Below, piece after piece: positions 3,682-41,760 of a stretch of DNA of 41,760 nt; within the stretch, counting starts at the first letter, position 1, and every line of letters begins with the position of its first letter. The notes beneath the pieces were generated by a model that saw nothing but the letters and a program-made list of their open reading frames with translations, searched no databases and had not been told where the DNA came from. Made by a program: the position numbers and the translations under genes. Source of the DNA: Basidiobolus meristosporus CBS 931.73 (lineage: Eukaryota > Fungi > Basidiobolomycota); assembly GCA_002104905.1 (NCBI GenBank), contig MCFE01000728.1:1-41760 (forward strand). Reading direction: 5' to 3'.

Positions 3682-4074
3682 CTCCTGACTTACCTGTGGA
3701 TCCCTGCCTTCTGCCCAACGTTTGAAGAAAACTTGTAAAAGGAATACTCACCGTAAATATCACCCATCATCTTTCCCTAGTCTTGTCCTATAAAGGCAAA
3801 GATACTTTATCTTTGTAAAGCTATTGGTCAAAGCTGCATTCACTTTATTACCCTGCTGGTGGAGCTTACAGTTGTTACAGTATTGGAAGCTTTAGTACAA
3901 TACTCTATCAAAGGACGTTGAAACCAGTACCTTCTGAAGTGACGCTAACTTATTTAAGTTGGGGATTGTGGCTCAATAGTTGTATTCTTGACATACTAGT
4001 GGCTTTACAAACCCACAACCTAGTTTAGTATATTCCAGTATTCCTTGCAAGTTCATCCGCCTTCCTCTGCTACC

Positions 4075-5007
4075 ATGTCCAACCTAGAGCTGAGCTTTGC
4101 CCAGCTCATGGCTGCCTTTACCCAACCGCAGCAAGACCATGCAGACCTCAGAAACACTCTTGCTCAGTTCCAAAACCAAAGTGTCCAGCAAACTAGCCAT
4201 GTCCCAGTCTACCAAGAACCCAAGTATACTCCTGCTACCAAGTTCAATGGTTCTCAGAATGAATTCCATGGCTTCATCAACATGGTGAAGAACAATCTTG
4301 CACTCCAGCCTAACCGGTACCCCACTGACCAGGCCAAAGTTGGTTTCATCTCCAACCTGCTTACTGGTACAGCTCTCAAGTGGTTCTCCCCACTAGTGGA
4401 GACCAACTCTCCCCTCCTCAGAGACTACCAAGCTTTTCTCACTGAAATGGAGCTAACATTTGGTAACCTTGACCAAGCCAGAACTGCTGCCAGCAAGATC
4501 AAGACCCTCAAGCAAAGGAACAAACCAGCATCAGTCTATGCCTCAGAATTCCGACAACTCTCCAGTGACCTCAGCTCCTGGGGTCAAGCAGCCTTGATTA
4601 ACCAATTCCAAGATGGCCTCAATGATGAAGTTTGTGATCTGCTACTCACACTCCCAGATCCAGATACATTGGTTGAGGCTATACACCAAGCAATCCAGTG
4701 TGATAACAGACTATTCCAGAAGAAGCAAAAGAACCGTCAAAGACACATTCCTGTTGCAGTCCCAGCCCCTCCTGCTCCCCAGGTCACTCCAGAAGATCCT
4801 ATGCAGATTGATAGTGCCAAATACAAGAAACTATCAAAGAGTGAAAAGTCCAGACATCAACAAGCCAACCTCTGTCTATACTGTGGCCAACCAGGTCACT
4901 TTGCAAAGTCCTGCCCCAACAAGAAGTCCAGCTTCAAGCTGATGCAGTCCTCCAGCAACCAACCTGATTCAGATCTGTTGGGAAACTCCAATGTCCAGTT
5001 GCACTGA
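4075..5007 (+). CDS. gag: Gag of element A (310 aa from the first ATG)
   Basis: Retrotransposon gag-like core (KFNGS...LLTGTALKWF; QRNKPASVYASEF) and CCHC knuckle CLYCGQPGHFAKSC. Confidence 0.93.
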   Translation: MSNLELSFAQLMAAFTQPQQDHADLRNTLAQFQNQSVQQTSHVPVYQEPKYTPATKFNGSQNEFHGFINMVKNNLALQPNRYPTDQAKVGFISNLLTGTALKWFSPLVETNSPLLRDYQAFLTEMELTFGNLDQARTAASKIKTLKQRNKPASVYASEFRQLSSDLSSWGQAALINQFQDGLNDEVCDLLLTLPDPDTLVEAIHQAIQCDNRLFQKKQKNRQRHIPVAVPAPPAPQVTPEDPMQIDSAKYKKLSKSEKSRHQQANLCLYCGQPGHFAKSCPNKKSSFKLMQSSSNQPDSDLLGNSNVQLH

Positions 5008-5024
5008 CAGGCTTGCAACTGGAC
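4980..5024 (+). promoter_or_regulatory. -1 programmed ribosomal frameshift signal
   Basis: G GGA AAC in the gag frame at 4980-4986; 6-nt spacer; perfect 11-bp stem 4993-5003/5014-5024; the -1 frame is open into pol. Confidence 0.88.
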
Positions 5025-8000
5025 CCACCCATGAAAATCCAGCATATCCAAGAATCTTCCTTTGCCACAAAATCTATCCAGTTCTTGAGAATGCCTGTCA
5101 AAATCCAGATCCCTGACTCCAGTCCTGTCCCAGTCCTAGCCTTGATTGATTCCGGTGCTTCATCCTGTTTCATTGACCAAGCCTTTGTCCAGAAGCACTC
5201 TATTCCTGTTACCTTGAAATCCTGTCCAGTCCAAGTAGAAGTTATTGATGGAAGATCACTCTCCTCTGGTGCCGTTACCCATGAAACATGCTTACTTCAG
5301 CTGTCCAGTACTGCTCACCAAGAAAGAATCGCCTTCAACATCATCAACTCACCACACTATCCTATTGTGCTTGGAAGCTCATGGCTGAGCTACCATAATC
5401 CAAGTATTGATTGGAAATCCAAGATCCTGTCATTCACCAGATCCCACCAAGTCAACTCCATGAAATCTCCAGACCCTGATAACCGTGAAAAGACTGTTGC
5501 CAACAGTTCAACAGCCCAAGATACCTTGCCAGCTGAAGGAGCCCCCTCAGCAAACATACCAGCCAAGTACCAAGAGTTTGCCCATGTCTTTGACAAGAAG
5601 AAAGCAGAACTCCTCCCTGACCATTGGCCTTGTGACTGCCCTATTGACCTTGAAAATGGAAAAGTCCCTCCATTTGGCCCAATATATAACCTCTCCCAGC
5701 TGGAGTTGAAAGAACTCCATGGTTATATTGAAGAAAACCTCCAGAAGGGTTTTATTCAGCACTCCAAATCACCTGCTGGAGCCCCAATCCTCTTTGTCAA
5801 GAAGAAGGATGGCACACTCGGAATGTGTGTGGACTACCGTGCTTTGAATAAGATCACAGTCAAGAACCGCTACCCCCTGCCCCTGATCAACACACTATTG
5901 GATCAGCTATCTGCTGCCCAAGTCTTCACCAAGATTGACTTGAGAGGAGCTTACAATCTTGTCAGAATCAAGCCCGGTGATGAATGGAAAGCTGCCTTTT
6001 GTACAAGATATGGTCACATTGAGTACAAAGTAATGCCATTTGGCCTCACCAATGCCCCTGCTGTGTTTCAACACCTCATGAATGACATATTCTGTGAATA
6101 CCTTGACCAGTCTGTGCTAATCTACCTTGATGATATTCTCATATACTCCAAGAGCCAAGATGAACATGATGAACATGTCAAGAAAGTATTGAGAAAACTA
6201 GACTCTGCTGGTCTCTATGCCAAGCTAGAGAAGTGCAAGTTTGACCAGAGAGAAGTGGAATTTCTTGGTTACCTCATCAGCCCTGAGGGAACAAGAATGG
6301 ACCCAAAGAAAGTTGACTCAGTCCAATCCTGGAAAACTCCAAGCTCAGTCAAGGAAGTACAATCCTTCCTGGGATTTGCCAACTTCTATCGCAGGTTCAT
6401 AGCCAACTACTCCAAGATAGTCACCCCTCTGACAAAGCTTACCCAGAAGAACACACCTTTTGCCTGGAATGAGGAGCAATCCAGCTCATTCAACCAACTC
6501 AAGAAATCTTTCCTGAAGGCCCCCCTGCTTGCCCACCCTGACCTTGAGAAGCAATTCATAGTGGAGACTGATGCTTCTGATTTTGCCCTTGGTGTCATAC
6601 TCTCCCAGTATGATGAGGACAATGTGTTGCACCCCATTGCATTCTACTCTTGCAAGTTTTCCCCTGCAGAGATCAACTATGATATCTATGATAAGGAGTT
6701 GCTTGCCATCATTGTAGCCTTTGAGCAATGGAGACACTACCTGGATGGTGCAAAACACAAAATCAAAGTCTTCTGTGACCATAAGAACCTTGAGTACTTT
6801 GCAACTTCTAAAGTACTAAACCGGAGACAAGCCAGATGGTCACTCTTCCTGTCCAGCTTTGACTTTACTATCACCTATAGACCTGGTGCAAAACAAGGAA
6901 AGCCTGATGCCCTGTCCAGAAAAAAGGAATATGCCCTGGAAGTGGGAGATGATGCCTGTTGGCAAATGGAACACCCATTGGTGAGCAAGAAACACTTTGA
7001 GATTCTTGCCACCCAGTCCTCAAGTCTTGTCATCCCTTCATTCCTAGTAAGGATATCAGAATCCCAAGCCTCTGATATGACTTCCAGCACCGTCAAGAAA
7101 TATCTGGAATCCCCAGTTGGGCCCCCTCCCAAGTTCCCAAACATCCAGAACCTGCATTTGGTAAACAACCTCATCTACCACAAGCAGCAGCTTTACGTCC
7201 CAGACCTTGCCACCCAGCTAGACATCATTAAGTCTTGGCATGATTCAATGGCTGCAGGCCACTTTGGTACTGCCAAAACCTTGAATGCTATCAAAAGAGA
7301 TTTCTGGTGGCCTAGAATGATAACTCTTATCAAAGAGTACATTCTGACTTGTGATATTTGCAACCATGCAAAACCAGCCAGACACCAGCCCTATGGACTT
7401 CTTCAACCCCTGCCTATCCCAGAACACCAATGGAGATCTATATCTATGAACTTCATTACTGACCTCCCTGAGTCATGTGGCTTCAATGCTATACTTGTAG
7501 TGGCTGACCGGCTGACCAAGATGGCTCACTTTATCCCTTGCTGTAAGAACACTGATGCAAAAGAAACTGCTGCTTTAGTCCTGAAGAATATTTTCCGCCT
7601 TCATGGTATCCCCAGTGATATTGTGTCAGATAGAGGCCCACAGTTTGTGTCCAAGTTTTGGAAACACTTCATGCAATACCTTGGTGTTCAAGTCAAGCTC
7701 TCTACTGCCTTCCATCCACAGTCTGATGGCCAGACTGAAAGAATCAACCAGATTCTAGAGCAATACCTCCAGTGCTATATCAATTACCAGCAAGAAAATT
7801 GGGTTGATCTACTCCCTGTTGCTGAGTTTGCCTACAACAACTCAAGCCATAGTGCAACCGGTTTTACACCATTCTATGCAAACTATGGATTCCACCCTCA
7901 GTTTGATATCCAGATTCCAACAAGCCCAATGAGCCCACATGCGGCTGAACATGCCCAAGCAATCCAGGACATCCAGAATACCCTCAAGGTAGAACTATCC

Positions 8001-8511
8001 TTAGCTCAGGAAAGCTACAAGAAATTTGCCAATCTAAAACAGCATCCCAGCCCTGATCTTAATGAAGGAGATTCTGTATGGCTGCTCAGAAGAATCATCA
8101 GCACCAACCGCCCTGTGACAAATTGGATTTCAAGAAGCTTGGTCCTTTCAAGATCAAGAAGAAGCTTAGCCCTATAGTATATCAGCTACAGCTACCAGCA
8201 AGTATGAAAATCCATGATACTTTCCATGTGTCCCTCCTGGAGCCGTATTGTAGGAACACCTTGCCAAACCGGCAAGAAGCAAAGCCCCAAGCTATCCAGG
8301 TTGACCAACATCAAGAATTTGAAGTTAAACAGATTCTAGACTCTAAGTATATCCGGTCAAAGCTGTACAACTTAGTAGACTGGATTGGTTATGGCCCAAG
8401 TGACCAAACATGGGAACCAGCTACCCATCTCACTAATTGTCAAGAACTAGTTATCCAGTTCCACCAACAATATCCTGCAAAACCTGCCCCCAAGGGAAAA
8501 GAGCTTTGCCT

Positions 8512-8523
8512 GGAAGAGGAGAA
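8512..8523 (+). promoter_or_regulatory. Polypurine tract of element A
   Basis: GGAAGAGGAGAA ends 3 nt before the 3' LTR. Confidence 0.8.
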
Positions 8524-8526
8524 TAG

Positions 8527-9046
8527 TGTCATGATCACATGACAACCATGAACACCCATGCCAAGTTTCAGCTTCCTAGCTCAATTTCTAAGGAATTCCT
8601 TCTGGAACCTTCTACCACCTTCCACAAAGTTCCTGACCATTCCAAACCATTGTTACACAATGGAACATTCCATGGAAGCTTTCCATTGTATTTTCATAGT
8701 CCAGTACCATAAATGGAAATACCAGGTCACATGACTTAGTCACATGATCAGGTGACCCAATCCATTTCCCCATCCTGTCTCAGTGCCGTGTCATCTATGT
8801 CATTATCCCCAGCACCATTGCTGTGCCTCACCCCACAACCCCATTAGTATTAACTAATATCTCTTGGCATCAGTATAGCCAAAAAGTATATATAGTCCTA
8901 TCCCCCCTTAAGTATTCCTCAGTCTGATAAACACAGGTCTTGAATAAATAGCCTTGCCTTGAATCCTGCCTTGCCTTGATGGTCCACATCTAAGTCCTTT
9001 CCTGCCATGCCTAGCTTTTCCTCCTGCCTTGTTTCTATTCATAACA
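8527..9046 (+). repeat. 3' LTR of element A (520 bp)
   Basis: Direct repeat of 3148-3668, followed by TSD TATCC. Confidence 0.97.
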
Positions 9047-10664: not shown

Positions 10665-11556
10665 AAAATAACATGGTCCTGTGGGCTGATCCAAAATGGA
10701 TCAGCCATCAGGAGAAAGTAATAATACCAGCAGTTTGGAATTAATAACCCTCTACACAATTTTATGACAGGATTACAATAGCATCTGGCTAACTTTACCT
10801 CCAAATAAGGTTAGAATACAAAATGGTGTTTGGGTGGGGCTTTACCAAGCATTGCATGGCATTGGTGCAGTCTTAGTGTTCACTAAAATTATATGAGTGG
10901 ATCTAACCAGCCTGTATATCTAGTTGCCTTATATGGCAAAAACTTGACAGTGTTATCATGGCCTCATTGTAAGCCTCTGATGGCATTATCACAGCAGTAT
11001 GGCAGCATACAGCTAGTTCTGCATACTGCTACTGTACCAATTTACCAAATGGTATTTCCTTTTTCTACCTCACCATGAGCAATTCATAGATTACATTGTA
11101 GATTTACCCCTCTTCATCTGCTTACCCGCTTCCACCTTAGGTATTCCCCACATAGCTCAAATCAAACAAAATTATGGCCTCCTGCCTACTAACCTCTATA
11201 ACCGTGCACACCTGCCGCAATTGACATACTCCTATCACCTCAGCTTTACGGCTTTTCAGTGTGTTACTTGCAAAGTTGCCATATACCTTGTGCTGCTAGT
11301 AACATATACATCTTGCAAACATATGCTTAGTTGCTGCCACTTCTGCCATGAATACCTCTTGAATATCAGCAAAGAACCTTTTGGTATTTAGCCATTATAT
11401 TCCTTCTTCCTGCTGGATACTAGTCCCCCTTATAGGTGTGCTCTGGCTCTTGCTTGTGTGAATTCTTTGGCAAATGGAAGTAGAAATTGGCTTGTGACCA
11501 AAGGAAATCTGGCATACCTTGGTCAAGTTTTCCTAATAAATATTAGTTGCTTGTTA
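10665..11556. repeat. Unclassified repeat F, most complete unit (~0.9 kb)
   Basis: Colinear with 1388-1999 and with 11995-12243 + 15933-16204. Confidence 0.7.
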
Positions 11557-11994: not shown

Positions 11995-12243
11995 ACCACA
12001 TGAAAAATAATTTGGTCCCATAAGTGGATCCAGTCCAGATCAGCCATCAGGATCCTGTTTAGAGACCATCATGATACCAGTAGCTTGGAATTAGTGACCC
12101 TCCTAGCAATCCTATGACAGGATCATGACGGTATTTTGCTAATTTTACATCCAAATAAAGGCATAAAACTTGACAATATTTTATTAGTGCTGTGACAATA
12201 TTTATATGGTATTGTTGAGGTCTTTTAGCACTCTATAGCTATT
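11995..12243. repeat. Repeat F unit interrupted by the DNA transposon (continues at 15933-16204)
   Basis: Joining the flanks (...ATAGCT-ATT-TTAAGTGGATC...) restores colinearity with 10850-10910. Confidence 0.7.
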
Positions 12244-12780
12244 AGACTTGTTCCGTTGGATAGTGCCATATAGTGCCCCCCTGTTTGAAGTGCCAGATCA
12301 ATCTGGCACTCTACGGCACTATCTGGCACTATAATTTCTACCATGATGCCAGTGGTATGATACAGTTACTGGTAATTTTACTCAATCTTATTTGTGTTTC
12401 TCAGAATAGTGCTTTCCTTGCTTCATTTACTCTTCATAATGCTCCAGACACATTTCTCTCAGTGGATGTCTTCTTGTATGAGCATACTGTGCATTAATAA
12501 GTATCTTAATTATTAGACTTGTTCTGTTGGATAGTGCCACATAGTGCCAGCCTGTTTATGGTGCCAGTTTGATCTGGCACTCTACGTCACTATCTGGCAC
12601 TATAATTTCTACCATGATGCCTGTGGTATGATACAGCTACTGGTAATTTTACTCAATCTTACTTATGTTGCTCAGAATAGTGCTTTCCTTGCTTTATTTA
12701 CTCTTCATAATGCTCCAGACACATTTCTCTCAGTGGATATCTTCTTGTATGAACATACTGTGCATTAATAAGTATCTTAA
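12240..12780. repeat. 271-bp tandem duplication of the transposon left end
   Basis: Units 12240-12509 and 12511-12780 differ at about 19 positions (~93% identity); each begins TATT-AGACTTGTTC. Confidence 0.92.
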
Positions 12781-13582
12781 CTATTTTACATATTCTGCTG
12801 TTTTCTCCTATATATGACTTTCCTCTGTATTTACCTGCCAATATGCTGAATCTCTTCAGATATCCAAATGTGTGCTCTACCCTTACTCTGAAATGATTAA
12901 ATATCTCATTGTAGAGCTTCTGCTTCCTGCTAAGTACACCATTGCTTGGCTTCCTATAAGCTGTAATACATCCTAATCTCTGACAATCCTCTCCTATGTA
13001 AGCTAAGTCTGCAATACATTTCTCCCCTCTACTGAATTCAGGATGATTCTCTACCCAGAGTGCTTTGTCATGCCTACTTCCAGCAAATGGCCCACTAAAC
13101 CAGATGATGTTACCCTCAATGTCAGACAGTGCTTGAAACTTCACACAGTGTGCCTTGTACTTGCCAGAATAAAAGTGTCTCTGCCCTCTAGAAGGTCTGT
13201 TAATCCTCACTGGGAAGGTATCCAAAATACTCCTGATATGGAACCTGTTGCTGAACACTCTGGGATATGGAAGTCTATTGGAGCTTCTGAACCTAGTATT
13301 CCAAGCTTGCTCTAAGTCATTCATACCCTCTGCAAGGTGGTTCTCCATTGCTGTCAGCTGGGAATGAAAGCTTCTAGGACTTTTGTTGCCATGGATGGTG
13401 GGATGAAACCTTGTAGGGCAATAGTTCTTGTAATAGAAGAGAAGCTTGACAAGGGATCTCCTTGAGAAGATTGGGGTTGATGGTCCACAGTACTTGGAAT
13501 AGATCTCCTCTAGTGTGTCAAAAGGAAATCCAGTGGTAGTGATGGGATTGATGAGAAAAGACCATTCAGATGAGTAAGTCAT
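12698..13582 (-). CDS. DDE transposase, DDE_Tnp_4 / Harbinger-IS5-like (294 aa from ATG)
   Basis: Motifs ILDTFPVRINRP, YSGKYKAH..KFQ...D..G.I, GSRHD, IADLAYIG, and YNE...RVRVEHTFGYLKRF; uninterrupted; lies inside the TIRs. Confidence 0.92.
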   Translation of the reverse strand: MTYSSEWSFLINPITTTGFPFDTLEEIYSKYCGPSTPIFSRRSLVKLLFYYKNYCPTRFHPTIHGNKSPRSFHSQLTAMENHLAEGMNDLEQAWNTRFRSSNRLPYPRVFSNRFHIRSILDTFPVRINRPSRGQRHFYSGKYKAHCVKFQALSDIEGNIIWFSGPFAGSRHDKALWVENHPEFSRGEKCIADLAYIGEDCQRLGCITAYRKPSNGVLSRKQKLYNEIFNHFRVRVEHTFGYLKRFSILAGKYRGKSYIGENSRICKIVKILINAQYVHTRRYPLREMCLEHYEE

Positions 13583-13941
13583 ATTAAAATTGGTGGATGA
13601 TTGTATAAAGGTGGTTTGAATCAATTTGGCGCAATCCGCCTTATTTATCTGATTTTTAATACATTATGGTTAAATCTCCATCAATTGCCACGTATCCCAT
13701 CATTATGTTGCAAAAATCATCCGCAAACAATGCCTTGATACTTTTATTGATGCTTTAATCTTAGGTCTATAATCAAATAGGAAATCTGCAATTGATGTGA
13801 TCTGATCCGTGTCAACACAATCCAAGATGCATCATGCATCATATATGGAGATTTCAACAATCACATTAGTTTTCATATATATTTCATATAAGACCAGGTT
13901 GATGTCAATATACTGCTGTATAAGTATCCAAATCCGTTGCT

Positions 13942-15189
13942 ATGGTCCCCATACCAAGCCTCAACTCATCTTTAGTACAACCCAGACAAAACCCATCCCC
14001 CAGCTCACAAGCGCAGTCCGGACCGGAAAAGTCAATGTCGGATCCGTTCAAATTCTTGCCAAATGATTTTAGTATGGCCCAAGTGTCTATGATGAGCCTT
14101 CATACAGATATTTGGGCACTACTGATTAGTCTAGCAGAACTAGATACCTCAGAGAGTCGACAAAGATGGAAGAATTTGAGTAGAAAGCTGTGGCATGAGT
14201 TCTACATCAAGATGCCAGCCAATGTATGTAAAAGGATATATAACAAGACAAGTATTGAAATCAAGAATGAGCTGAGAGTGAGGGGATTTGACAAAGAAGC
14301 TGCGCGGGAGCAATTTTGCGCGCAATTTGCACAGTACGGGCCGGACACGTCCGTTCGTGCCTCAACTTTGGGAACTAAAGAGATTTTGAATGAGTTTTTG
14401 CCTCAAATGACTAATGTACTACGTGATATATTAGTAGAGCTAGGTGGCTTCCAAGAGCAATATACACAGGACTCATCCAGGCAACAGGTCCAAAGTATCA
14501 GACAGAGGGTAAGTGAATACCTTGAGGAATCAGATGGTGAGCTTCAGGAGGAAAAATACAGACCGCGAGCAACATCATCCAGATCGCGCCAGCACGCCTT
14601 GCTGGATTCCCTACCATCTCTTGCAACCACAGCGCGCTGGCGCACGTCAGTCCAGAGCACGCCAACACCCTTTACCGGAACGCCCCTCCTTGAGTCAACA
14701 CGCGTTGGGTCAACGCGCGCGCTTCAGAGCAAAACTACAAGAACTCGCCAAACTGCTCATTTAGACACAAGTCCGTTGGAGCGGACCAAGTTGCGTCAAC
14801 TTGCAGCATCACATCAAACTCAGCCAAGGGCCATCTCAACGCGTCAAGGTGCGCCTGCGCGTGCCGTTTTGCCTGACCATCAGCTAGTTACTTCTGGTGA
14901 ACTGACTGATGATGACCAACATGAAGTGCCTCAACCACCGGAGCCCTTGGCAAGTAAAAGAAAGCGTCAGCGCGTGGCACTACAGGCCGGTTCTGTTGGT
15001 TCAGTTGGAGCAATTCAGCGCGGCCAAGCTGTAGCATCGCACTCATCAACTAGGAGGCAAAATACTGACTACAAATACACAAGTAGCCAAGATGATAGTC
15101 AGCCAGGAAGTAGTATAGGTGTGCAAAGTGAGTCACTACCAAATGCTTCAGTAGTAATCCCTGTGAGAAAAAAACCCAGGAGAAGATGA
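13942..15189 (+). CDS. Transposon accessory protein (415 aa); putative DNA-binding N-terminus and low-complexity S/T/R/Q-rich C-terminus
   Basis: Long uninterrupted ORF inside the TIRs, divergent from the transposase; IWALLISLAELDTSESRQRWKNLSRK resembles Myb/MADF helices; ends in the basic motif RKKPRRR (NLS-like). Confidence 0.75.
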   Translation: MVPIPSLNSSLVQPRQNPSPSSQAQSGPEKSMSDPFKFLPNDFSMAQVSMMSLHTDIWALLISLAELDTSESRQRWKNLSRKLWHEFYIKMPANVCKRIYNKTSIEIKNELRVRGFDKEAAREQFCAQFAQYGPDTSVRASTLGTKEILNEFLPQMTNVLRDILVELGGFQEQYTQDSSRQQVQSIRQRVSEYLEESDGELQEEKYRPRATSSRSRQHALLDSLPSLATTARWRTSVQSTPTPFTGTPLLESTRVGSTRALQSKTTRTRQTAHLDTSPLERTKLRQLAASHQTQPRAISTRQGAPARAVLPDHQLVTSGELTDDDQHEVPQPPEPLASKRKRQRVALQAGSVGSVGAIQRGQAVASHSSTRRQNTDYKYTSSQDDSQPGSSIGVQSESLPNASVVIPVRKKPRRR

Positions 15190-16204
15190 TGCAATTGCTT
15201 TGAATTGCTCACATTTGTAATGATCCCAACAACCCTTTTTTTTCGCAAACCAAATTGAGCCGTTGCAAATCAGTGATCATCAAATTTTTGATATAAGTAA
15301 TATCAAGGTCGTCTCACATTTGAGACAGAACCCCTATAAATAAACACCCTGCATATATATACGTCATCTGTAATACCAGTGCAGCTATTGGATCTGTTTT
15401 GCACCTACACGATTGCTTGCGTGCTGGCTATGACACCTTGTCCAATCACTAGGATCAGGGATTTACTTGCTCAATGAGCAAAATGGGATATTTGATGGCG
15501 AATCAGGTAGCTTTTTTAGTAGTCAATGAGCCAATTGGGGGCTGCCAGCTTCAGGATACTTTTGGACCAATTAACCACTGAGATACCGTCCAATTGGAGT
15601 GAGGGTAACCAAAATGGTAAGTATTAGTGTAGTTTATAGTGTGATACACATTTATTTCCATTTGCATTAAAGAAACATATCCAAATACCGGATTTTACCT
15701 GCCATAATAGCGGTATCCAATCGCGCACGTGATGCAAACATTACGAGTTGGCGCGATCATCCATTCCAACCTCATCGTGTCAGATTGTGCCATAGTGTGC
15801 AAGATTGTCCCGCATAGTGCAAAATCGTCCAGGATTGATCCTTCCTTCTGGTAGCTATAATATTGCGCCCAATCGTTCTTTACAACCACGGATTGCGCCG
15901 CACGCCCTGGCACGGTACAATGGAACAAGTCTATTTTAAGTGGATCCAGTTGGCCAGGACATCCAATTGCCTTATATGGCAAGAAACATGACAGTATTTT
16001 GACAGCCTCACAGCAAGACTCTGATGGCATTATATTGGCAGTATGACAGCCTACTACAGGTTCTGTATAATGCCGCTGTACCAATTTACCAAATGGTATT
16101 TTCTATTTCTACCTTCCCCTGTGCAATCATATATTCCACTGTAGAATCACCCCTCTTTATTTGCTTACCCACTACTACCTTGGGTATTCCACATATAGTT
16201 CAGA

Positions 16205-16872: not shown

Positions 16873-19800
16873 CTTGAATGGTCCTGTCCATTGTGGCTCA
16901 AACTTCTTCCAAGTGATGTTTCTTAGCAATACAAAGTTCCCAACTGGTAATGCTTCTGGTGCTATAGTCTTATCAATTCTCTGCTTCATCTTTTCTGCAC
17001 TTTGAGATACTTTTGTCTGTGCCTCTTGATGTCTTTGTTGCAGTTGCTGGTGCCTACTTGGCTGACTGAGTTCATCATCTAAGGTGTCTGTAAGCTTTGG
17101 TTGTGTGAGATCTCCTGGAATCCTTGGTTCACATCCATACACTAAGTAAAATGGCAATTGCTGGGTGGTGTTGTGTACTCTGACTGTGCATGCAAAGAGT
17201 GCTTAGTCTATATCCTCATCCCATCTATTGACAACTACATTTGCATACTTGGTCAGCATTCTTCCAAAAAATACATTAAACTGTTCAATGACTCCATTAG
17301 TTCTAGGGTGATATGCCAAGGTTTTCAAGTGTCTGGTGTGCTGCATTTCCAGGCAAGCTTCCAATGTCTTGGTCATAAAGTTTGCACCTCTATTGGATAG
17401 AATCTCTACATGGCATCCAAACTTCATAAGGATCTCATGGTATATGAAACTTGAAATTTATTGTTCACTGGCTATAGGTACAGCTTTAGCCACTGGCCAT
17501 TTAGTGGCACGGTCAATAGCTACTAGGATCCAACAGTTGCATTTGCTGGTAGTTGGCAGTCTTCCAATAAAGTCAATTCCCCATCTTTCAAGTGGTCTTA
17601 CAGGCTCCAAGGGAAAGATCTCAGCAATTCTCTGTGGTTGGCCTTAGTTGATTTGGCAATTTGGGCATGTTTTCACTAGCTTCTCAATGTCTTGTTTCAT
17701 TCTGGGCCACCATGCTCTGGCTTTTGCAAGGCTATAGGTCCCTTCAATTCCAAGATGTCCATATCCATTGTGTAGCTTATGTATTAAATCCAGGCAAGAA
17801 GCATAAGGGCAATAGGCAATAGGGCTTCCATCAACAATTTGGTAGAGTGTTTCATCCAATACTACAAATTTGCTGGCTTCATCCTGGATTATCTTCTTGA
17901 TATCTTCATCCACCTCATTAGGAATGGCTTGGTCCTCCAAGTACTTTGGTAATAGGTTAGGCCAATTGGATTCATGCACCAACTTGAGTTGTGCAACTTG
18001 ATCTAATCTTGATAAGGCATCAGCAACCATATTGTTTTTTCTAGGGCAGTTGACCATCTCCAAGTCATATTGCTGAATGTATTCACTCTATCTTGTCATT
18101 CTTCTGGTGAGTACCTTCTGAGTAAATATATACTTGAGGGAGGCATGATCAGTCTTCACAGTGCATTTGACTCCTGCAATATAGCATCTCCATGTCTTCA
18201 AACAGTGTATTATAGCAAGCATCTCCTTCTCATGGACTGGATAGTTTTGTTCAGCTAAGTTCAGTTTCTTGGACTCAAAGACAACAGGGTAGTCCTTTCC
18301 CTTGTGTTCATGGCTCAACACTCCACCAATTGCATAATCTGAAGCATCTGTGCACAGAGTAAACTCTTTTCTGAAGTCAGGTATTCTTAAGCTTGGCAGC
18401 TTAGTAAGTTCATTCTTGAGCATCTGGAAGGCAGTCTCACAAGCTATGTCCCACTTGTAGGTATTGTCTTTCTTGAGGATATCAGTTAAAGGGGCTGCAA
18501 TACTTGCAAAAGACTTGACAAATCTCCAATAATAGCAAACCATTCTAAGGAACTATCTGAGCTCTGATATGTTATGGGGCTGCTTCAGATTCTTAATTAC
18601 TTTCACCTTTTTAGGGTCTGAGGTTACTCCTGTACTAGTCACTATGTGTCCCAGATATTCAATGTGTTCCTTGAAGAATTCACACTTGGGTAGCCTGCCA
18701 TAAAGCTTGCTCTCTCTTAGCTTTGGCAAGACCTTTTCAATGTGCACTGACATGTACTCATGCAATGCTCCTGAGTCAAATATGATCTTGGCCGGTACTC
18801 CATTGATTACTCCATTCAAGTATAATAGCTTTCCTGAGTTTGAGGTCATCTGGAATAGGTATTCTTCTATCATGTGGAAGGTGAGTTCTGAGTCTTCTTC
18901 AAGTTCATCCTCCATGTTACTATGTTCCATGGCCTGAATGCAGTGTGGTGGTGTATAGGTCCAAGGGAGAGATACATCCAACACTTCTCAAGTGTTTTGT
19001 GTGTGGGGTGTTCACTGGGTGCGATAACCTCTGGCAAAAGCTTGCTAGGAATACTTGGGTTCTGTCTCTAATCTAATGTGAAGGGGAATAAAGCCACAAG
19101 CTTGTCAAGGGAAAACTATTGAGCTACAATCCCCAACTTAGTTGGTGTCCTAACAAAAGTATGTGCTGGGTTCAGCATCCTTTAAGATGACAATGTACTA
19201 AAGCTTCCAAAGTCAAAACAACTGTAAACTCCACCAGCAGGGACTTGATAAGAATGCAGCTGTGGTCAATAGTTACAAAGACAGAAAAGTATCTTTGCCT
19301 GTACAAGAACAAACTTGGGAAAGAATCAAATATAATAAAAGATACCTACTCTGAGTATTCCTCACAAGTAGTGCCTCCAAGGTCAGTTGGCTGTCAGCGC
19401 GGTTTCCTGGGAGTGTCCTGTGGTCTGGGGTTGGAAGTTCAGGTAGCAGCAGGTAGCAGTGATCACACTAATCAACAAGTCGGTATATTGATAAAAGTGA
19501 TGATGATTTATTGTTGAGGGATAGCCTCCCTTATATACTTTTCTCACTGGCTAAGTGATTACTAATCATGGTGTTCCAGAAGGTTCCGGAGATCAATAGA
19601 AATCTTAGTGACATCAGAATGACCTAAGAATGTTCTAAGTAGGTGCCGGAAGGTTGTAAGAGGCACAGCACATCCAACCAATCAGGAATCAGTATTCTGA
19701 AACCTGTGTAACATGGGGATACCATATATGGTATGGAAATGGGAGGGATGGTGACATGGGCTGATCATGTGTCACGGGTACTGGCGCGGGTACTTGCCTA

Positions 19801-25249: not shown

Positions 25250-28200
25250 GGCTTGAGTAACAACATTGCTGCGCAACTACCCAGTAAATTTTTAGTGGCT
25301 GAATTATACTAAATAGCTCATCAGCTGCTCCATGGAATTCCAATACCCTATAATGGTACCTTGTAGATATCTAAGAACCCACTTGATAGCTGTAATTTGA
25401 TCTGATCCATAATTCAACATGAATTGACCAAGCTTTCCCACAGCTATTGCAGTATCTGGACATGTAGATATCATCAAGAACATCAGGCTGCCAACCACTG
25501 ATTGATAGGGAAAGGCTTGGCCCATGTTTGCACAGATTGGACCCAAGTCTGGCTGGGCTTCACTCAATCTTAGGCTATTTTCCATGGGTGTTGCTACCGG
25601 TTTGCAATTTTTCATTTTGCAGCCCCTAAAATGTACCAGATGTGCATAGACTGATTCAGTGCAAGTTCCTGTGTAATTATTTTAAGTTTTTACATAATTC
25701 TAAGAAAATAGCTGAATTTTGCCAGATCTTTCTTTTCAAACTTGCCAAAGAGTTCTGATTTTGGGTGCTTAAGTGACTCCTGTTGACTTGTAGCTTATAT
25801 CAGGTCTTTCACATATAAAAAATGGATGGTTACACCCTTTTTGGGCTGTTTCACATAGCTACTGTGATCTGCAGTGCTACAAACAACCCAATCTCCAGTA
25901 GATATGTATAAATCTTGTTATACCATGCTCTAAGAGCCTGTTTCAGTACATGCAACAGTCTTTTGAGTCTGCACACATTATTGAGGCCTTTTGGGTCAGA
26001 AAAACAGTCTGGATGCTTTATATATATAGCTTCTTGCAGATCCCTATTGAAAGTGGCTGTTTTGATGTCCATTTTATACAAATCTACACAGTGTATAGCT
26101 GCCAGAGCTAGAATTATCCTAGTGGAGTTTAACATAGCTACCAGAACAAATGCTTCCTTAAGGTCTAGTCCATGGATCCAGGAATTGTTGAAATATTGGA
26201 CTATTTGGTATCATTCAGCAGCTAAAAATTTACTTAACAACTCTAGACTAGTCTTAGTCACTGTAGGACTCATTTACTGCCTTAACTTTGCCACTTTCTC
26301 CAGATATATGATCTTATGATTATTCCCTTATAATCAAGATCAAATTAGCATTATTACCAGACATTATGTACTAACCCTGAAACTGTTAGAATGCTCCTGA
26401 ATATTGAGAAACCCTCCCTACTTAGTGTTACAGCTGTATTACTGCTACAAGGTATAAATACTGAGCTTCTTTATGAATAAACAACAGTTCAACTATTATC
26501 ACTATTTCTTGAAAAGTTCCTTATATCCAAATCACTTCTTAAATTGCAACAGGAATAGCCTTTAGTCACCAATCTTACCATGTACCAATCCTTGGTACCA
26601 TTTGTGGCTATCTTAATCCTGTAGACCCATCTATATTCTCTATGCTTTCTCCCAGCTGCTAAATCTACTAGTTCCTGCATTTTGTTACTCCTTCTGCATG
26701 GCTAGTTGTCACAAAGCACCATCTAGACTTTGCATTGCCAGCTCCAGATTCTCAGGCTTGGCACTTAAGGCAAGATACCGTTATTCATGATCAATGGATA
26801 TCTGCCACCAGGATCCAGGAGTATTTCTTATTCTGGTTGATTTCCTAATAGGGATAATCTGCTCTGATCTGGAACTGGTAAAATTCTCTTCCAAATCTGG
26901 CTGAAGTAGGTATGCATCTTTTTGATTAGTTTTGATTGCATCATGAGGCAGCAGGCCAATGCTATTGGTGGCTGCTGAATCTAAACATCCCTGCTGTTGA
27001 TCAGGTTCTATATTTGGCCATCATACACTCTTTACCCTTTAGCTTCTTTACAGTTTCCAAGAAAGATCTCTTTTCTACTCTGTGATTCATACTCTGAGTG
27101 CTTTATGTCAGGAATGTGATAGAATACATCAGTGCCAGAGATCCTGAGATGCTGAAGGAGTGGTTTTTTGCCCATCTATACTTCAAAGGGTGTGCAATCA
27201 TATAATGTTGTTGTTGAGCATTGACTCTTGACGTATACCGCAGTAGCAAGAGATTCAGCCTAACACTTGTTGTCCGTTCCTTTATTGTATAGGAAAAATC
27301 TTCCCATCTCTACTATTGCTCCAGTTGCATATTTTAATACTCCATTTAGCTGTGGAATAATTACAACAGTGGTCTTTTGAAGTTTTCCTGTAATTGAGCA
27401 GTGTCTGGAAACTCATTAGATCAGTATTGCCCTCCATTGTCACTTCATAGTACCCTCAGTTTACACCAAGTTTGTGGTTCTGTTATTCTCTTGCAGTACT
27501 TGAGCATCTATAGGGCCTCATCCTTTGTCTTGAGGAAGTACTTTTATGTATATCTTGTCTTGTCATCAATGAATATCATGAAATATCTGTTAGCTCCATA
27601 GTAGAGTATTCTGATGAGCCCACATATGTCCAAGTGCACAATAGCCAGTATTTTAGTGGTATAAATGCGTCATGGGCTCCTCATATGTTTCTATGTACCT
27701 TACAGACACTTAATTTGATTGGAATTGAGTAATTTAGACCAGAGACAAGCTGGTATTTCACCAATTGGTTCATATTCTGTTCCTCAATGTGTCCTAGCCA
27801 CTTATGCCACATCTTGCTGCTTGTTTCATCAGCTTCAGCAATGATAAAATACACCATTACAATAATATAGCATTGTCACTTAGATATATTGTGATCTCTG
27901 ATTCCCAAAGCTAGATTTTGTTCTTTTTACTCAGTATTCAGCAGCTTAGCTTTGTAAGAGCAACTTTCTGTCCTTGAGTAGTAGCTTTACTGACTGAGAG
28001 TAGGCTCTTAGCTATTCCAGGCACAAAGAAGACATCAGTCAGTTTTGCTGCTGTTGCCTGGAGATATCACTCATATTTAGCTCAATATACCCACTGGCAG
28101 TAGCCTCCTATTCAGAGTTGTCTCCCAGGTAATCTTTTCTTGAGGGGAATAGTCCTTAAGTTGCGCATCCACTCCCTTATACCAAAAATATGTGGTGATA

Positions 28201-28440: not shown

Positions 28441-28459
28441 TATCATGTGGCCAGGGCAA

Positions 28460-29916
28460 TGGATTACATCTAGGATGTACAACAGATAAGTTGAGACTTA
28501 GCACAAGGATTATAATGCTGGGTTTGGATACTTATAAAGTAGTATAATGGTATTGACCTTGTAGTATATGAGATATATATGAAAGCTGATGTGATTGTTG
28601 AATTTTCCATAAATTAGGCATATGACATCTTGGAATTGCATCTGCAAAGATTAGACCACATGATTTGCAGATCCCTGATTCTATAATATACAGGATCATT
28701 TTATTGAAGAATCCTTTACAGGTTGCTGTTAACAATTGATTTGTGCAATATTTTGAAGAAACAGATGGCAATTGATGGCAATTCAATCATATAGTATGGA
28801 GAAATAAATACATCAAGTCAATTGCGCTGAGCTTATTTAACTTACTCTGACAAAATCACTTGGCAACCTTGATATGACCTACTGATCTGAATGGTCATTC
28901 CTCATCAGTTCTGTCAATAGTACTGAATTTCCTTTTGGCACATCAGAGGAGATGTAAACCAAGTACTGTGGACCATCCACTACAAACAACTCAAGGAGAC
29001 TCCTTGTTAGGCTTCTCTGCTATTTGAAGAGTGATTTCCCTACAAGGTACCATCCTGCCATCTATGGCAACAGAAGTCCTAGTAGCTTTCATTCACAGCT
29101 GACAGCAATAGAGAGCCACCTTGCAGAGGGTATGGATGATTTAGAATAAGCTTGGAACACTAGGCCCAATATCTTCAGTAGACTTCTATTTTCCAGAGTG
29201 CTCAGTAGCAGGTCCTGTATCAGGAGTATTTTGTACACCTTCCCAGAGAGGGTTAACAGATATTCAGGAGGACAGAGATGGTTCTACTCAGGCAAATACA
29301 ATGCATGCTGAGTGAAGTTTTATGTACAGACTGAAATTAAAGGTAACATCATCTAGCCTAGTGGGCCATTCACTCAAAGCAGGCTCAACAAAGTGCTCTG
29401 TGTTGAAAATCATTCAGAATTTGTTAGAGTGGCAACAGGTAAAACAAGCTTTACTTGAAGAGGAGAGGATTGTCAGAGATCAGGATGTATTATAGCTTAT
29501 ATAAAGACAAGGAATGGTGTGCTTGGCGGGAAACAGAGGCTGTGCAATGATATACCAGAACATATCCAGTTGAAAGTAGAGCTTAGACTTGAATATATAA
29601 AGAAATTGAGGATATTAGTAGGTAGATGTAGAGGAAGGATATATATATCAGGAAATGGCAGAATGGGTAAAGTAATCACAATACCATTATAAGTGCAATA
29701 CGTCCATACAAGAAGACATCCACTGTGAAAATATGTTGGGAGTATTAAGAAGATTCAATATAGCAAGTAACTCATATTCTGCTTGATATAAGTATGTTGA
29801 GCAAAGTTATCAGTAACTGTACTCTACTGCAGGCATCATTGTAGACATATGAGTGCCAAATGGTGCCATAGAGTACAGAGTGATCAAGCACTCTAAGTAG
29901 GCTGACTCCATGTGGC
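28460..29916 (+). pseudogene. Decayed second copy of the PHIS transposon (opposite orientation); transposase pseudogene ~28874-29760
   Basis: Aligns by eye with the reverse complement of ~14000-12530, covering the ORF2 start, the intergenic region, the whole transposase and the subterminal region. Confidence 0.88.
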
Positions 29917-30230
29917 TGCTGAAATATTGGACTATTTAGTAATATTCAGCATTGAAATCTTACCAAACAATTCTAGACTAGTCTTAGTTGCCATAGGACT
30001 CATTTACTGGCGCAATTTAAGAAGTGTTGTGGATATATGGAACTTATCAAGATGTAACAAAAAAGTTGGATTGTTCTTTCACCATAAAGAAGCCCAGTGT
30101 TCATACCTTTGTAAAAGTAATACAATGGTAACATTAAGTGAGGAAAGCTTCTCAACACACAGGAGCATTCAGTAACAGTTTCAGGGTTGGCACATTATGT
30201 TTGGTAAAAGTGCTGATTTGATCTTGGCTG
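29917..30230. repeat. Family D' LTR pieces: forward 5' part (29917-~30048) then inverted middle/3' part (~30050-30230)
   Basis: Matches 26186-26317 forward and 26335-26505 in reverse. Confidence 0.75.
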
Positions 30231-30245
30231 CATATATGCCACAGT

Positions 30246-30909
30246 GTGCCAGAGAGGCCAAGTGAACCTATACTTGGCCACAGAGTGTGAAACATAGCTC
30301 TGCATCTTCATGCAAAGCAGCCCCTGTGATTTACATATGATGCAGGAGAAAATCTATTTTTTGACGTTTTTTTGTGGATCAAAGCTGTGCAGGATGTGTA
30401 AGAGCACAGAAGAACTGAAGACATGCATCAAGTACTGAATGCCCATGGCACTCTGAATCTAGCTACTGTAGCTTGTAACATGTCAGAAAAATACATGGCA
30501 CTATCATGGTCCACTGGTACTATCTTGCACTATAAGTTCTTTGTACAGATCTTACTTTAGGGCTAATAATCAAGTATAGTACCAGATTGTAACAGTGGAC
30601 CAAGATAGTACCATGTACTTTTCTGGCATGTCACAAGCCACAAGGCTAGATCCAGAGTGTTGTGGGTATTGAGTACCTGATGCATGTCTTCAGTTCTTCT
30701 GTGCTCTTATAACATTGACCCAAAAAAAAAGGTCAAAAAATGGAGTTTCTCCAATGCAATGGGTGAAACACAGGGATGGCTTTGCATGAAGACGCAGAGC
30801 TATGTTTCACACTCTGTGGCCAAGTTGAGCTTCACTTGGCCTTTCAGGCACGCTATAGCATCACTTGGCACTCCTGGCTCAATGTGGCACTATCCAATGG
30901 AACAAGTCT
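30246..30909. mobile_element. Foldback (long palindromic) non-autonomous element sharing the PHIS terminus
   Basis: Arms ~30246-30534 and ~30575-30851 are imperfect inverted repeats; right end GGCACTATCCAATGGAACAAGTCT matches the reverse complement of 12244-12267 at 23/24 positions; left terminus not found. Confidence 0.82.
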
Positions 30910-39736: not shown

Positions 39737-41760
39737 CTAATCTTGATGTGCGAAATTCCTATGCTTGAATAACTTAAGTCGATTTCCAGCAACTGGTGCT
39801 CTCAACTGGGTGTTGTCAAGCTCAGATATGTAATAACTTCCATTTCCAATCACTTTGGAAATGAGGTAGGGGCCAGTCCATTTGTTGTCAAACTTCCGAC
39901 TCCATTGCTTGTCCAAGGTAGAATCGTAGAGTAATACTGGGTCTCCTAGTGATAGTGGTTTAGGCCTTGTTGGGTGTGATTTGTCAAAGGGCACCTTGTT
40001 CTTTAGTCGTGTATCCTTAAGTTGTTCAGCAGCTCTGCTGATATTCAAGTCATGGTGATCAAGTTGCTGTATGCAAGTTGCAAGGAGGTCTTCAGTCTGC
40101 ATATTGGATCTCCAATTCAATGAGTTCCAAGTGACTGTGTTTAACTCAACCGGTAGTATGCAGTCATGTCCATAGAGTAGCTTGAATGGCGATAATCCAG
40201 TTGTCCTCTTAGTAGTAATTCTATCTGCCCACAGTGCAAGATGTAATTGCTGTGGCCACAGTGTTGTGTTATTCTCACAGGCCTTGACAAGAGAGTTCAC
40301 CAATGGTCCATGTCCTCTCTCTATCATTCCATTGGCTTGAGGGTGGTAAGCTGTTGTGAAAGCTATGTGTATCTTGTACTTTGAGCACAACTCCTGGATC
40401 ATTTGGGATGTCATCTCTCCTCTGTCAGCAACAAACTGTCGGATGCAGCCAAATCTGCAGATGATGTCTTCAAGTATAAATCTCCATATGGTATGGCTCT
40501 TGTTGTTGGGCAAGGCTCGAGCCTCTGCCCATCCACTAAGGTCATCTCTAGCAACAATCAGGTACTTTTTTGATCCAGCTGTTGGCATGTGGACAAGGTC
40601 AATACCAACCTTTTGCCATAGACAGATTGTGTAAGTAGGATGCAGTGGTTCTTCATAACGCTTGGAGGATCTCTTCTGGCAGGCTACACATGACTCAACA
40701 AAGTGCTGGACATCATAGTACATGTTTTCCCAGTAGTACCTCTGAGCTGTGGTATTGTATGTGGCTTCTCGTCCTCTATGTCCTCCTGGTTCTCCTTGGT
40801 GGATACTTGTCATGATGTTCAGTTGCTCTTGAGGGGTGGTGACTACTCTTCTTGGCATAAGTCCAGGCTTCACTCGCTTAAAGAGAAGATCATCTTTAAG
40901 ATAGTAGTGGTGTGCCTTCTTCCTGAGTTTTCTAAACTCCTGAATATCCATCCAACTAGGTTTCTTAAGTGTCCTTAGATATTCCTTGATCAGACTCCAG
41001 GTAGTTCTCTCTTGGTCTTTGATGGCAATCTGTCGGATCTCTGCATCAATAATATCGTCAAAGTGAGGGTCCAAGTCTTCAAATAATTGTGGTCCCTTCC
41101 TGGAGAGTGCATCAGCCACAACATTTGTCTTGCCAGGGATATGTTTGACCTCAAAGTCAAACATTTTCAGCCATGCCATCCATCGGTTTGTGGCATCATC
41201 AGGTAGGTCAGGCTTGTTGATCATTCCTATAAGTGGCTTGGCATCTGTCTCCAGGATAAAATGTGTCATGTAGAGTTGTGACTTCAGTTTCCTCAGCATC
41301 TTCACAACTCCTAGTAGTTCTCTCTTAATCTGTGAGTATCTTTGTTCTCTAGGAGAGAATAGGCAGCTCTCATATCTGCAGGCATAGCGGTTGCCATCTT
41401 CATCATCTTGTCCAAGTAGTGCTCCAGCTCCTATGGGGCTTGCATCCACTGTCAAAATAGGTGGGCATTCAGTGTTTTGATAGTCAAGAGGTCTTAGAAC
41501 TGGTGGAGATACTAAGGCCTCTTTCAGTAGTTGCATGGCTTCTTCTTGCTCTTCTCCCCAGATAAATGGGGTATTCTTTCTCTGTAGTCGGTAGATTGGT
41601 TCTGCTATCTCAGAAAATCTTGGGATCCAGATCCTAAAGAACCCACAAGCTGCCACAAAGCACGAGCTTGTGTTAGATTTGTGGGGGTAGGCCAGTTGCA
41701 TATCTTTTGTGTCTTGGAGTCTCCAGGTGAGCGACCAAAGGTGTGCATTTTGTCCAACAA
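39737..41760 (-). pseudogene. pol: Family B pol (RT end, RNase H, integrase), continuing beyond the window
   Basis: 654-aa open frame with TVDAS, ETDAK, H..GGH..CVAC, GIDL, ADRG, NGMIER, WTGPY; no chromodomain; apparent 1-nt frameshift near 41655 (LTQARA / FVAACG). Confidence 0.9.

Follow-up and report, generated by a model that had tools for sequence, protein, structure and literature searches.

The contig MCFE01000728.1 of the fungus Basidiobolus meristosporus CBS 931.73 (GenBank assembly GCA_002104905.1) was analysed over positions 1 to 41,760, and this whole stretch is referred to below as the window. The region 12244–15932 is very probably a single cut-and-paste transposon with two genes, a copy from the Pangu group, which belongs to the PHIS superfamily and is the group listed as Harbinger2 in Repbase (Kojima, 2025; PMC12730594). 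This placement was read from the sequence by comparison with the published description of the group's traits. It represents a new family or copy within this described group, and not a new type of element. Huge expansions of PIF-Harbinger elements have been reported in Basidiobolus genomes (Muszewska et al., 2017; PMC5751038).

The element is 3689 bp long and its termini are inverted, with A-G as the first bases. The left terminus (12244–12258) reads AGACTTGTTCCGTTG and the right terminus (15918–15932) reads AGACTTGTTCCATTG in reverse complement, so that the terminal inverted repeats (TIRs) agree at 14 of 15 positions; when the comparison is extended to 26 nt the agreement is 85%. With up to three mismatches allowed, the 24-nt left end was found three times in the window and not once in 100 shuffles. 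Immediately outside both ends lies the trinucleotide ATT (12241–12243 and 15933–15935); with no other 3-bp direct repeat are the inverted ends symmetric, and from this reading of the junctions we take it to be the target-site duplication. End comparison and a motif count show that the outer left TIR (12244–12269, plus strand), AGACTTGTTCCGTTGG..., is followed by subterminal (A)TAGTGCC motifs, and the first 100 bp of the element contain GTGCC three times in the forward and three times in the reverse orientation. In the map of open reading frames (ORFs), a transposase gene (12698–13582, minus strand; 294 aa) and a partner gene, ORF2 (13942–15189, plus strand; 415 aa), are arranged head-to-head around a 359-bp AT-rich spacer (13583–13941; 33% GC), which is presumed to be a bidirectional promoter region. 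The remaining 743 bp (15190–15932, plus strand) form a non-coding tail, CpG-rich in profile, that ends in the right TIR (15907–15932).

Genes, relatives and group membership

The transposase ORF (12701–13582, counted from its ATG) matches the Pfam profile DDE_Tnp_4 with an E-value of 1.8e-23 and a score of 83.3 bits (cut-off, 24.8 bits), and the match covers profile positions 1–153 of 158. All three residues of the presumed catalytic triad are intact: D121 lies within LDTFP, D192 within ADLAY and E236 within RVEH. The triad is invariant in five close relatives, and among a wider set of 18 sequences D121 and D192 are invariant while E236 is conserved in at least 90%. The nearest protein found, P0001, comes from a Logan assembly and shares 62% identity with the transposase across 98% of the query sequence. 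Because P0001 is likewise 294 aa long, the short transposase can be regarded as a conserved and complete gene model. The second-nearest relative is only 37% identical, and a profile search added 17 further sequences from metagenomes and Logan, which brings the number of relatives to 19. No solved structure related to the transposase by sequence was found.

ORF2 (13942–15186) encodes a protein with a helical N-terminal half and a basic C-terminal half that is rich in Ser, Thr, Arg and Gln and includes the stretches KRKRQR and RKKPRRR. It has no Pfam match at E-values up to 1 and no NCBIfam domain, a word search was blank, and the ESM Atlas held no useful neighbour; a full HMMER search of 1.84 billion representative proteins returned no match at E ≤ 0.001. 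A single-sequence AlphaFold model of residues 1–200 is all-helical but of low confidence (predicted local distance difference test score, pLDDT, 61), with helices predicted at residues 45–66, 70–88, 93–113, 119–132, 145–168 and 177–199. A Foldseek search with this model found nothing at E ≤ 0.001, and VIA-align (best Z 7.9) returned generic helical bundles only. As Harbinger elements have a Myb-like partner, we infer by analogy that ORF2 may encode an accessory partner with a role in DNA binding and nuclear import.

A first scan of metagenomes for related loci gave no matches. A second scan recovered eight contigs of 1.2–2.6 kb with intron-split transposases; none of the eight contains both ends of an element, hence no duplication could be read from them. 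Three distant metagenomic relatives likewise have an ORF upstream on the opposite strand, of low complexity and with basic and acidic composition, and the partner-like ORF of one locus, L005, has no sequence similarity to ORF2 (BLASTP E 5.8). At L003, L004 and L005, all on Joint Genome Institute (JGI) metagenome contigs, the encoded proteins P0005, P0011 and P0012 are 32–35% identical to the transposase by BLASTP. The transposase coding sequence of these three loci is distributed among several frames, suggesting that introns are present, and the loci lie in GC-rich DNA with short repeated motifs, for example TAGCGATAA and ATCGATGTAT, that resemble subterminal binding-site arrays.

Membership of the PHIS superfamily is defined by a transposase that can be aligned over the catalytic region at E < 1e-4 (Han et al., 2015, Mob DNA 6:12; PMC4482050), and the transposase described here aligns at 1.8e-23 with the D-D-E triad conserved. 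Within this superfamily the same authors define the Pangu group by a 5'-ANT-3' duplication, and describe TIRs of 11–40 bp, usually with AG or GG as the first bases, autonomous elements that average ~3487 bp, and a pair of ORFs, one encoding a DDE-only transposase and the other a protein without a known motif. Each of these traits is found in the Basidiobolus element, which has an ATT duplication, a TIR of ~15–26 bp that starts with AG, a DDE_Tnp_4 transposase, a motif-less ORF2 and a length of 3.4–3.7 kb (3689 bp overall, or 3418 bp measured from an inner left end described below). The 34 families in their Table S3, several of them from ascomycetes and basidiomycetes, have duplications given as ANT, AWT or ATT, transposases of 216–537 aa and partners of 170–592 aa, and two of the 34 have both ORFs intact; ATT is the duplication listed for Pangu_ADig and Pangu-1_MMar. 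The ORF sizes and sequence of the present element (294 and 415 aa) match none of the tabulated families, the nearest protein being the 62% identical P0001, and its duplicated 271-bp end and CpG-free transposase gene set it further apart; the assignment to Pangu is by traits and not by tree.

Most of this anatomy had been proposed in an earlier note on the window. Its coordinates, its TIRs and its uninterrupted head-to-head ORFs of 294 and 415 aa with a 359-bp spacer were all re-found; the PHIS assignment is borne out by the domain match and the intact triad, and the conservation of the catalytic residues, which it had put forward as a check, holds for D121, D192 and E236 across the five close and 18 wider relatives. 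The ANT duplications that it gave for Pangu agree with the literature (PMC4482050), and its view that the duplication is of a non-canonical, non-TWA kind is supported by the junctions. The note had also called the family uncharacterised. This stands in so far as we are dealing with a new family or copy, and does not stand for the kind of element, whose traits match the published description of Pangu.

Comparison with the other groups is consistent with this placement. The element shares with canonical PIF/Harbinger transposons (Harbinger3_DR, PIF and Pong) the DDE_Tnp_4 core, the two genes, the short TIRs with subterminal motifs and the 3-bp length of the duplication. However, the duplicated sequence is ATT rather than TWA (TTA/TAA) and no symmetric placement of TTA/TAA is available at the junctions, ORF2 has no Pfam Myb, SANT or MADF match (its structural model being of low confidence), and the transposase is shorter than most. 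There is also a weak but real similarity to the IS5 family in the catalytic region, seen as a match to NCBIfam transpos_IS5_4 (E 1.7e-13, 50.6 bits) that lies far under the 140-bit family cut-off. Pangu shares its ANT target with IS5 and adjoins it in the tree of Han et al. (PMC4482050), but the element described here is eukaryotic and has two genes, with a separate partner ORF. ISL2EU, Spy and Nuwa belong to the same superfamily and have related DDE cores. ISL2EU makes a 2-bp AT duplication and encodes THAP/helix-turn-helix (HTH) and YqaJ domains, whereas here the AT reading of the junctions is asymmetric and THAP and YqaJ domains were not found with Pfam. Spy elements insert at AAA|TTT without duplicating the target, whereas the flanks here read ...GCTATT and ATTTTAAG... 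and contain a 3-bp repeat. NuwaI and NuwaII make CWG and C|TNA|G duplications, respectively (the latter in the notation of Han et al.), and both have Myb/SANT partners; in the present case the flanks are ATT/ATT and Pfam gives no match to a Myb domain.

The insertion site and the duplicated left end

The junctions of the element read GCTATT|AGACTTG...CAAGTCT|ATTTTA and can be parsed symmetrically in two ways, as ATT|AGACTTG...CAAGTCT|ATT or as TA|GACTTG...CAAGTC|TA. A paralogue of the host repeat at 10721–11083 (71% identical), the only one that spans the junction, runs on across the whole of 12244–15932. This shows that the entire interval is an insertion and places it to within a few base pairs. 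The earlier note had regarded ATT as confirmed by this host-repeat continuity, which holds for the insertion at that resolution but not for the exact base: reconstructions of the paralogous site with ATT, with TA and with no duplication all score 35. Under the TA reading the true ends would lie one base inward (GACTTG...CAAGTC), the duplication would be only 2 bp, and the ANT definition of Pangu would no longer apply. The symmetry of the junctions and the paralogous site treat this reading as well as they treat ATT. However, a TA duplication requires three further coincidences to produce the full ATT/ATT repeat (~0.03), whereas an A-N-T duplication automatically gives the observed one-base extension of the TIR, and all four termini in the window have the terminal A. 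For these reasons ATT is preferred, by about 30:1 on this argument from coincidence. In addition, no PHIS group with a TA duplication has been described (Han et al., 2015; PMC4482050), and we consider a true 2-bp TA duplication to be very improbable.

At the transposase-side end, the element contains a tandem duplication on which the earlier note made no comment. Unit 1 (12244–12514, plus strand) and unit 2 (12515–12785, plus strand) are each 271 bp long and form a 93% repeat pair with 20 differences (7.4%). The second unit carries an inner left TIR, AGACTTGTTCTGTTGG, and also includes the end of the transposase gene (its final 28 codons and stop codon). The duplication therefore provides two alternative left ends in direct orientation, the inner of which delimits 3418 bp together with the right end. 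The tetranucleotide TATT is found before unit 1, at the junction of the units and after unit 2, which is the pattern expected of a microhomology-mediated duplication. Nine of the 20 differences between the units are clustered within 23 bp, at unit positions 35–57, and this clustering suggests patch conversion over independent point changes.

The divergence of the units also bears on the history of the insertion. When divergence of 7.4% was simulated as having accrued neutrally and in place (3.7% change per site), both ORFs remained open in only ~3.5% of runs. This low value implies either that the duplication is older than the present insertion or that its history is more complex; it is more likely that the duplication was inherited from the donor copy, or was patched by conversion. 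An origin of the duplicated end by nested insertion into an older copy was considered and rejected, as the host paralogue is continuous over 12244–15932 and no remnant of an older element lies beyond 15935.

Age, activity and proposed mechanism

The CpG content changes abruptly within the element. The 885-bp transposase gene is devoid of CpG, and AGA and AGG are the only codons used for its 27 Arg residues, whereas the ratio of observed to expected CpG is 0.62 in the spacer, 0.71 in ORF2 and 0.80 in the tail, compared with 0.13 for the whole window and at most 0.12 in the flanks. The CpG-rich right part, 2.3 kb in length, begins just past the transposase start codon and ends exactly at the right TIR. 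The drop at the right TIR supports both the right boundary of the element and a recent arrival of this copy. As judged from its sequence, the copy is structurally autonomous and probably young, and it is plausible that it is potentially active, with both ORFs open, the triad intact and a CpG-rich right half embedded in CpG-poor DNA.

Several observations weigh against the overall reading of the region as an autonomous and probably young Pangu copy. The ends are imperfect, as the 85% agreement over 26 nt indicates; they differ at position 12, which is CG in the outer left TIR, TG in the inner left TIR and CA at the right end, a change of the CpG-decay type, and at three of the four bases at positions 16–19. 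Together with the diverged terminal duplication, these mismatches tell against activity, and if the units diverged neutrally in place, then the probability of finding both ORFs open is ~0.035. The target-site duplication is read from a single full insertion (n = 1), at which the 71%-identical paralogous site scores ATT and TA alike (35 vs 35), and the sole other terminus, that of a foldback derivative at 30909, is uninformative, being flanked by a TAT that fits neither. Finally, ORF2 has no homologue or DNA-binding domain in the searches described above and its model is of low confidence, such that the role given to it is pure analogy.

The same classification could apply to a copy that is an immobile relic, with mismatched ends and a duplicated left terminus that no longer support transposition. 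The differences between the ends at positions 12 and 16–19, and those between the terminal units at 20 of 271 bp, are in keeping with such a relic, which we regard as possible, if somewhat doubtful. Set against it are the open state of both ORFs, of which 3.7% neutral change per site would leave both intact only ~3.5% of the time, the intact catalytic triad, and a right half that is still CpG-rich where the background ratio is 0.13, which points to recent arrival. The asymmetry of the left and right ends may, moreover, be normal for the family, and the foldback has a left-type end.

A different explanation of the CpG switch is that the element is a chimera, in which an old, CpG-purged transposase module has recombined with a recently acquired CpG-rich ORF2 and tail, ORF2 itself having been captured or having arisen de novo. 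The sharpness of the switch fits this idea (no CpG and exclusively AGR arginine codons in the transposase gene, against 0.71 in ORF2 and 0.80 in the tail), as do the lack of a relative of ORF2 among 1.84 billion representatives and the presence in the window of a diverged copy that has transposase and spacer but no detectable ORF2. However, Pangu partners are generally motif-less proteins of widely varying length (170–592 aa), so that orphan partners are usual in this group, and the similarity of the diverged copy ends 68 bp into ORF2, so that this copy may simply be truncated; we consider a chimeric origin quite unlikely. It is also conceivable, although unlikely, that ORF2 is a new class of accessory protein which replaces the Myb-like partner, and that the transposase gene has evolved to be free of CpG as an escape from mutation or methylation directed at CpG in this genome, with the ORF2 half remaining rich in CpG and unmethylated. 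If so, the transposon, with its two regimes, could persist and remain active in a genome where other repeats are destroyed.

Returning to the view of the element as a young and potentially active Pangu copy, a mechanism can be proposed in which the transposase would recognise the AGACTTGTTCC... ends and excise the element, and re-insertion would proceed via a staggered 3-bp cut at A-N-T sites. The divergently transcribed ORF2 would provide an accessory protein analogous to the Harbinger Myb-like partner. Through its basic tail, which resembles a nuclear localisation signal (NLS), this protein would carry the transposase into the nucleus, and it would also bind to the (A)TAGTGCC / ATTG(T/C)NCC motifs that recur immediately inside the termini. 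The foldback would then be a non-autonomous rider on the same ends. Pangu/Harbinger2 elements have been described from sequence surveys only, and in the literature searched we found no report of a partner function or a transposition assay for the group. The present copy adds a family, rather than a new kind of element. With its open genes, intact triad, defined ends and nearby hairpin derivative, it offers a usable start for a first two-component assay of a eukaryotic transposon that targets ANT sites, and a handle on the function of the motif-less partner.

Other repeats in the window

The window is a nest of repeats, two of which are related to the element. The diverged copy (28446–29916, minus strand) matches element positions 293–1766 with 73% nucleotide identity and is old and dead: its transposase frame contains seven stops, D121 is replaced by Y, the last 22 bp are missing, and ORF2 is not detectable within it. 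Alignment of the intact and dead transposase sequences over 852 bp (28874–29725) shows that 23% of sites differ, with 124 transitions and 75 transversions, no indels and a dN/dS of 0.61. The decay has thus been almost purely by substitution, and directional change of the kind caused by repeat-induced point mutation (RIP) was rejected, the substitution spectrum being symmetric. The second relative is a foldback (hairpin) non-autonomous derivative at 30236–30909, which consists of three inverted pairs with arms that are 82–89% complementary. At the right it ends in the family terminus (AGACTTGTTCCATTGGATAGTGCC, minus strand), and it lacks a left terminus. The earlier note had listed both features as relatives of the element. 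A foldback carrying the same terminus is indeed present, and the other copy is decayed as claimed, although its 73% identity falls short of the 80% that Han et al. (2015; PMC4482050) use as the threshold for a family.

Members of another repeat family are found at 29917–30226 and 26186–26555, with direct and inverted matches of 77–89%, and the first of these stretches lies between the dead copy and the foldback. This repeat family appears to have replaced both the last 22 bp of the dead copy and the left terminus of the foldback.

The statement in the earlier note that every other element in the region is damaged was not upheld, since a Ty3/gypsy chromovirus at 4045–8542 is nearly intact. Its gag ORF encodes 320 aa (Retrotrans_gag, zf-CCHC) and its pol ORF encodes 1054 aa that include protease, reverse transcriptase (RT), RNase H and integrase, and its only visible break is an apparent frameshift at ~8078–8177, before a 154-aa SH3/chromodomain tail in another frame. 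Further RT, RNase H and integrase fragments are scattered through the window, and among the pol fragments on the minus strand, at 39737–41701 and 18088–18543, are a 654-aa ORF with RNase H and integrase and a 151-aa RNase H ORF.

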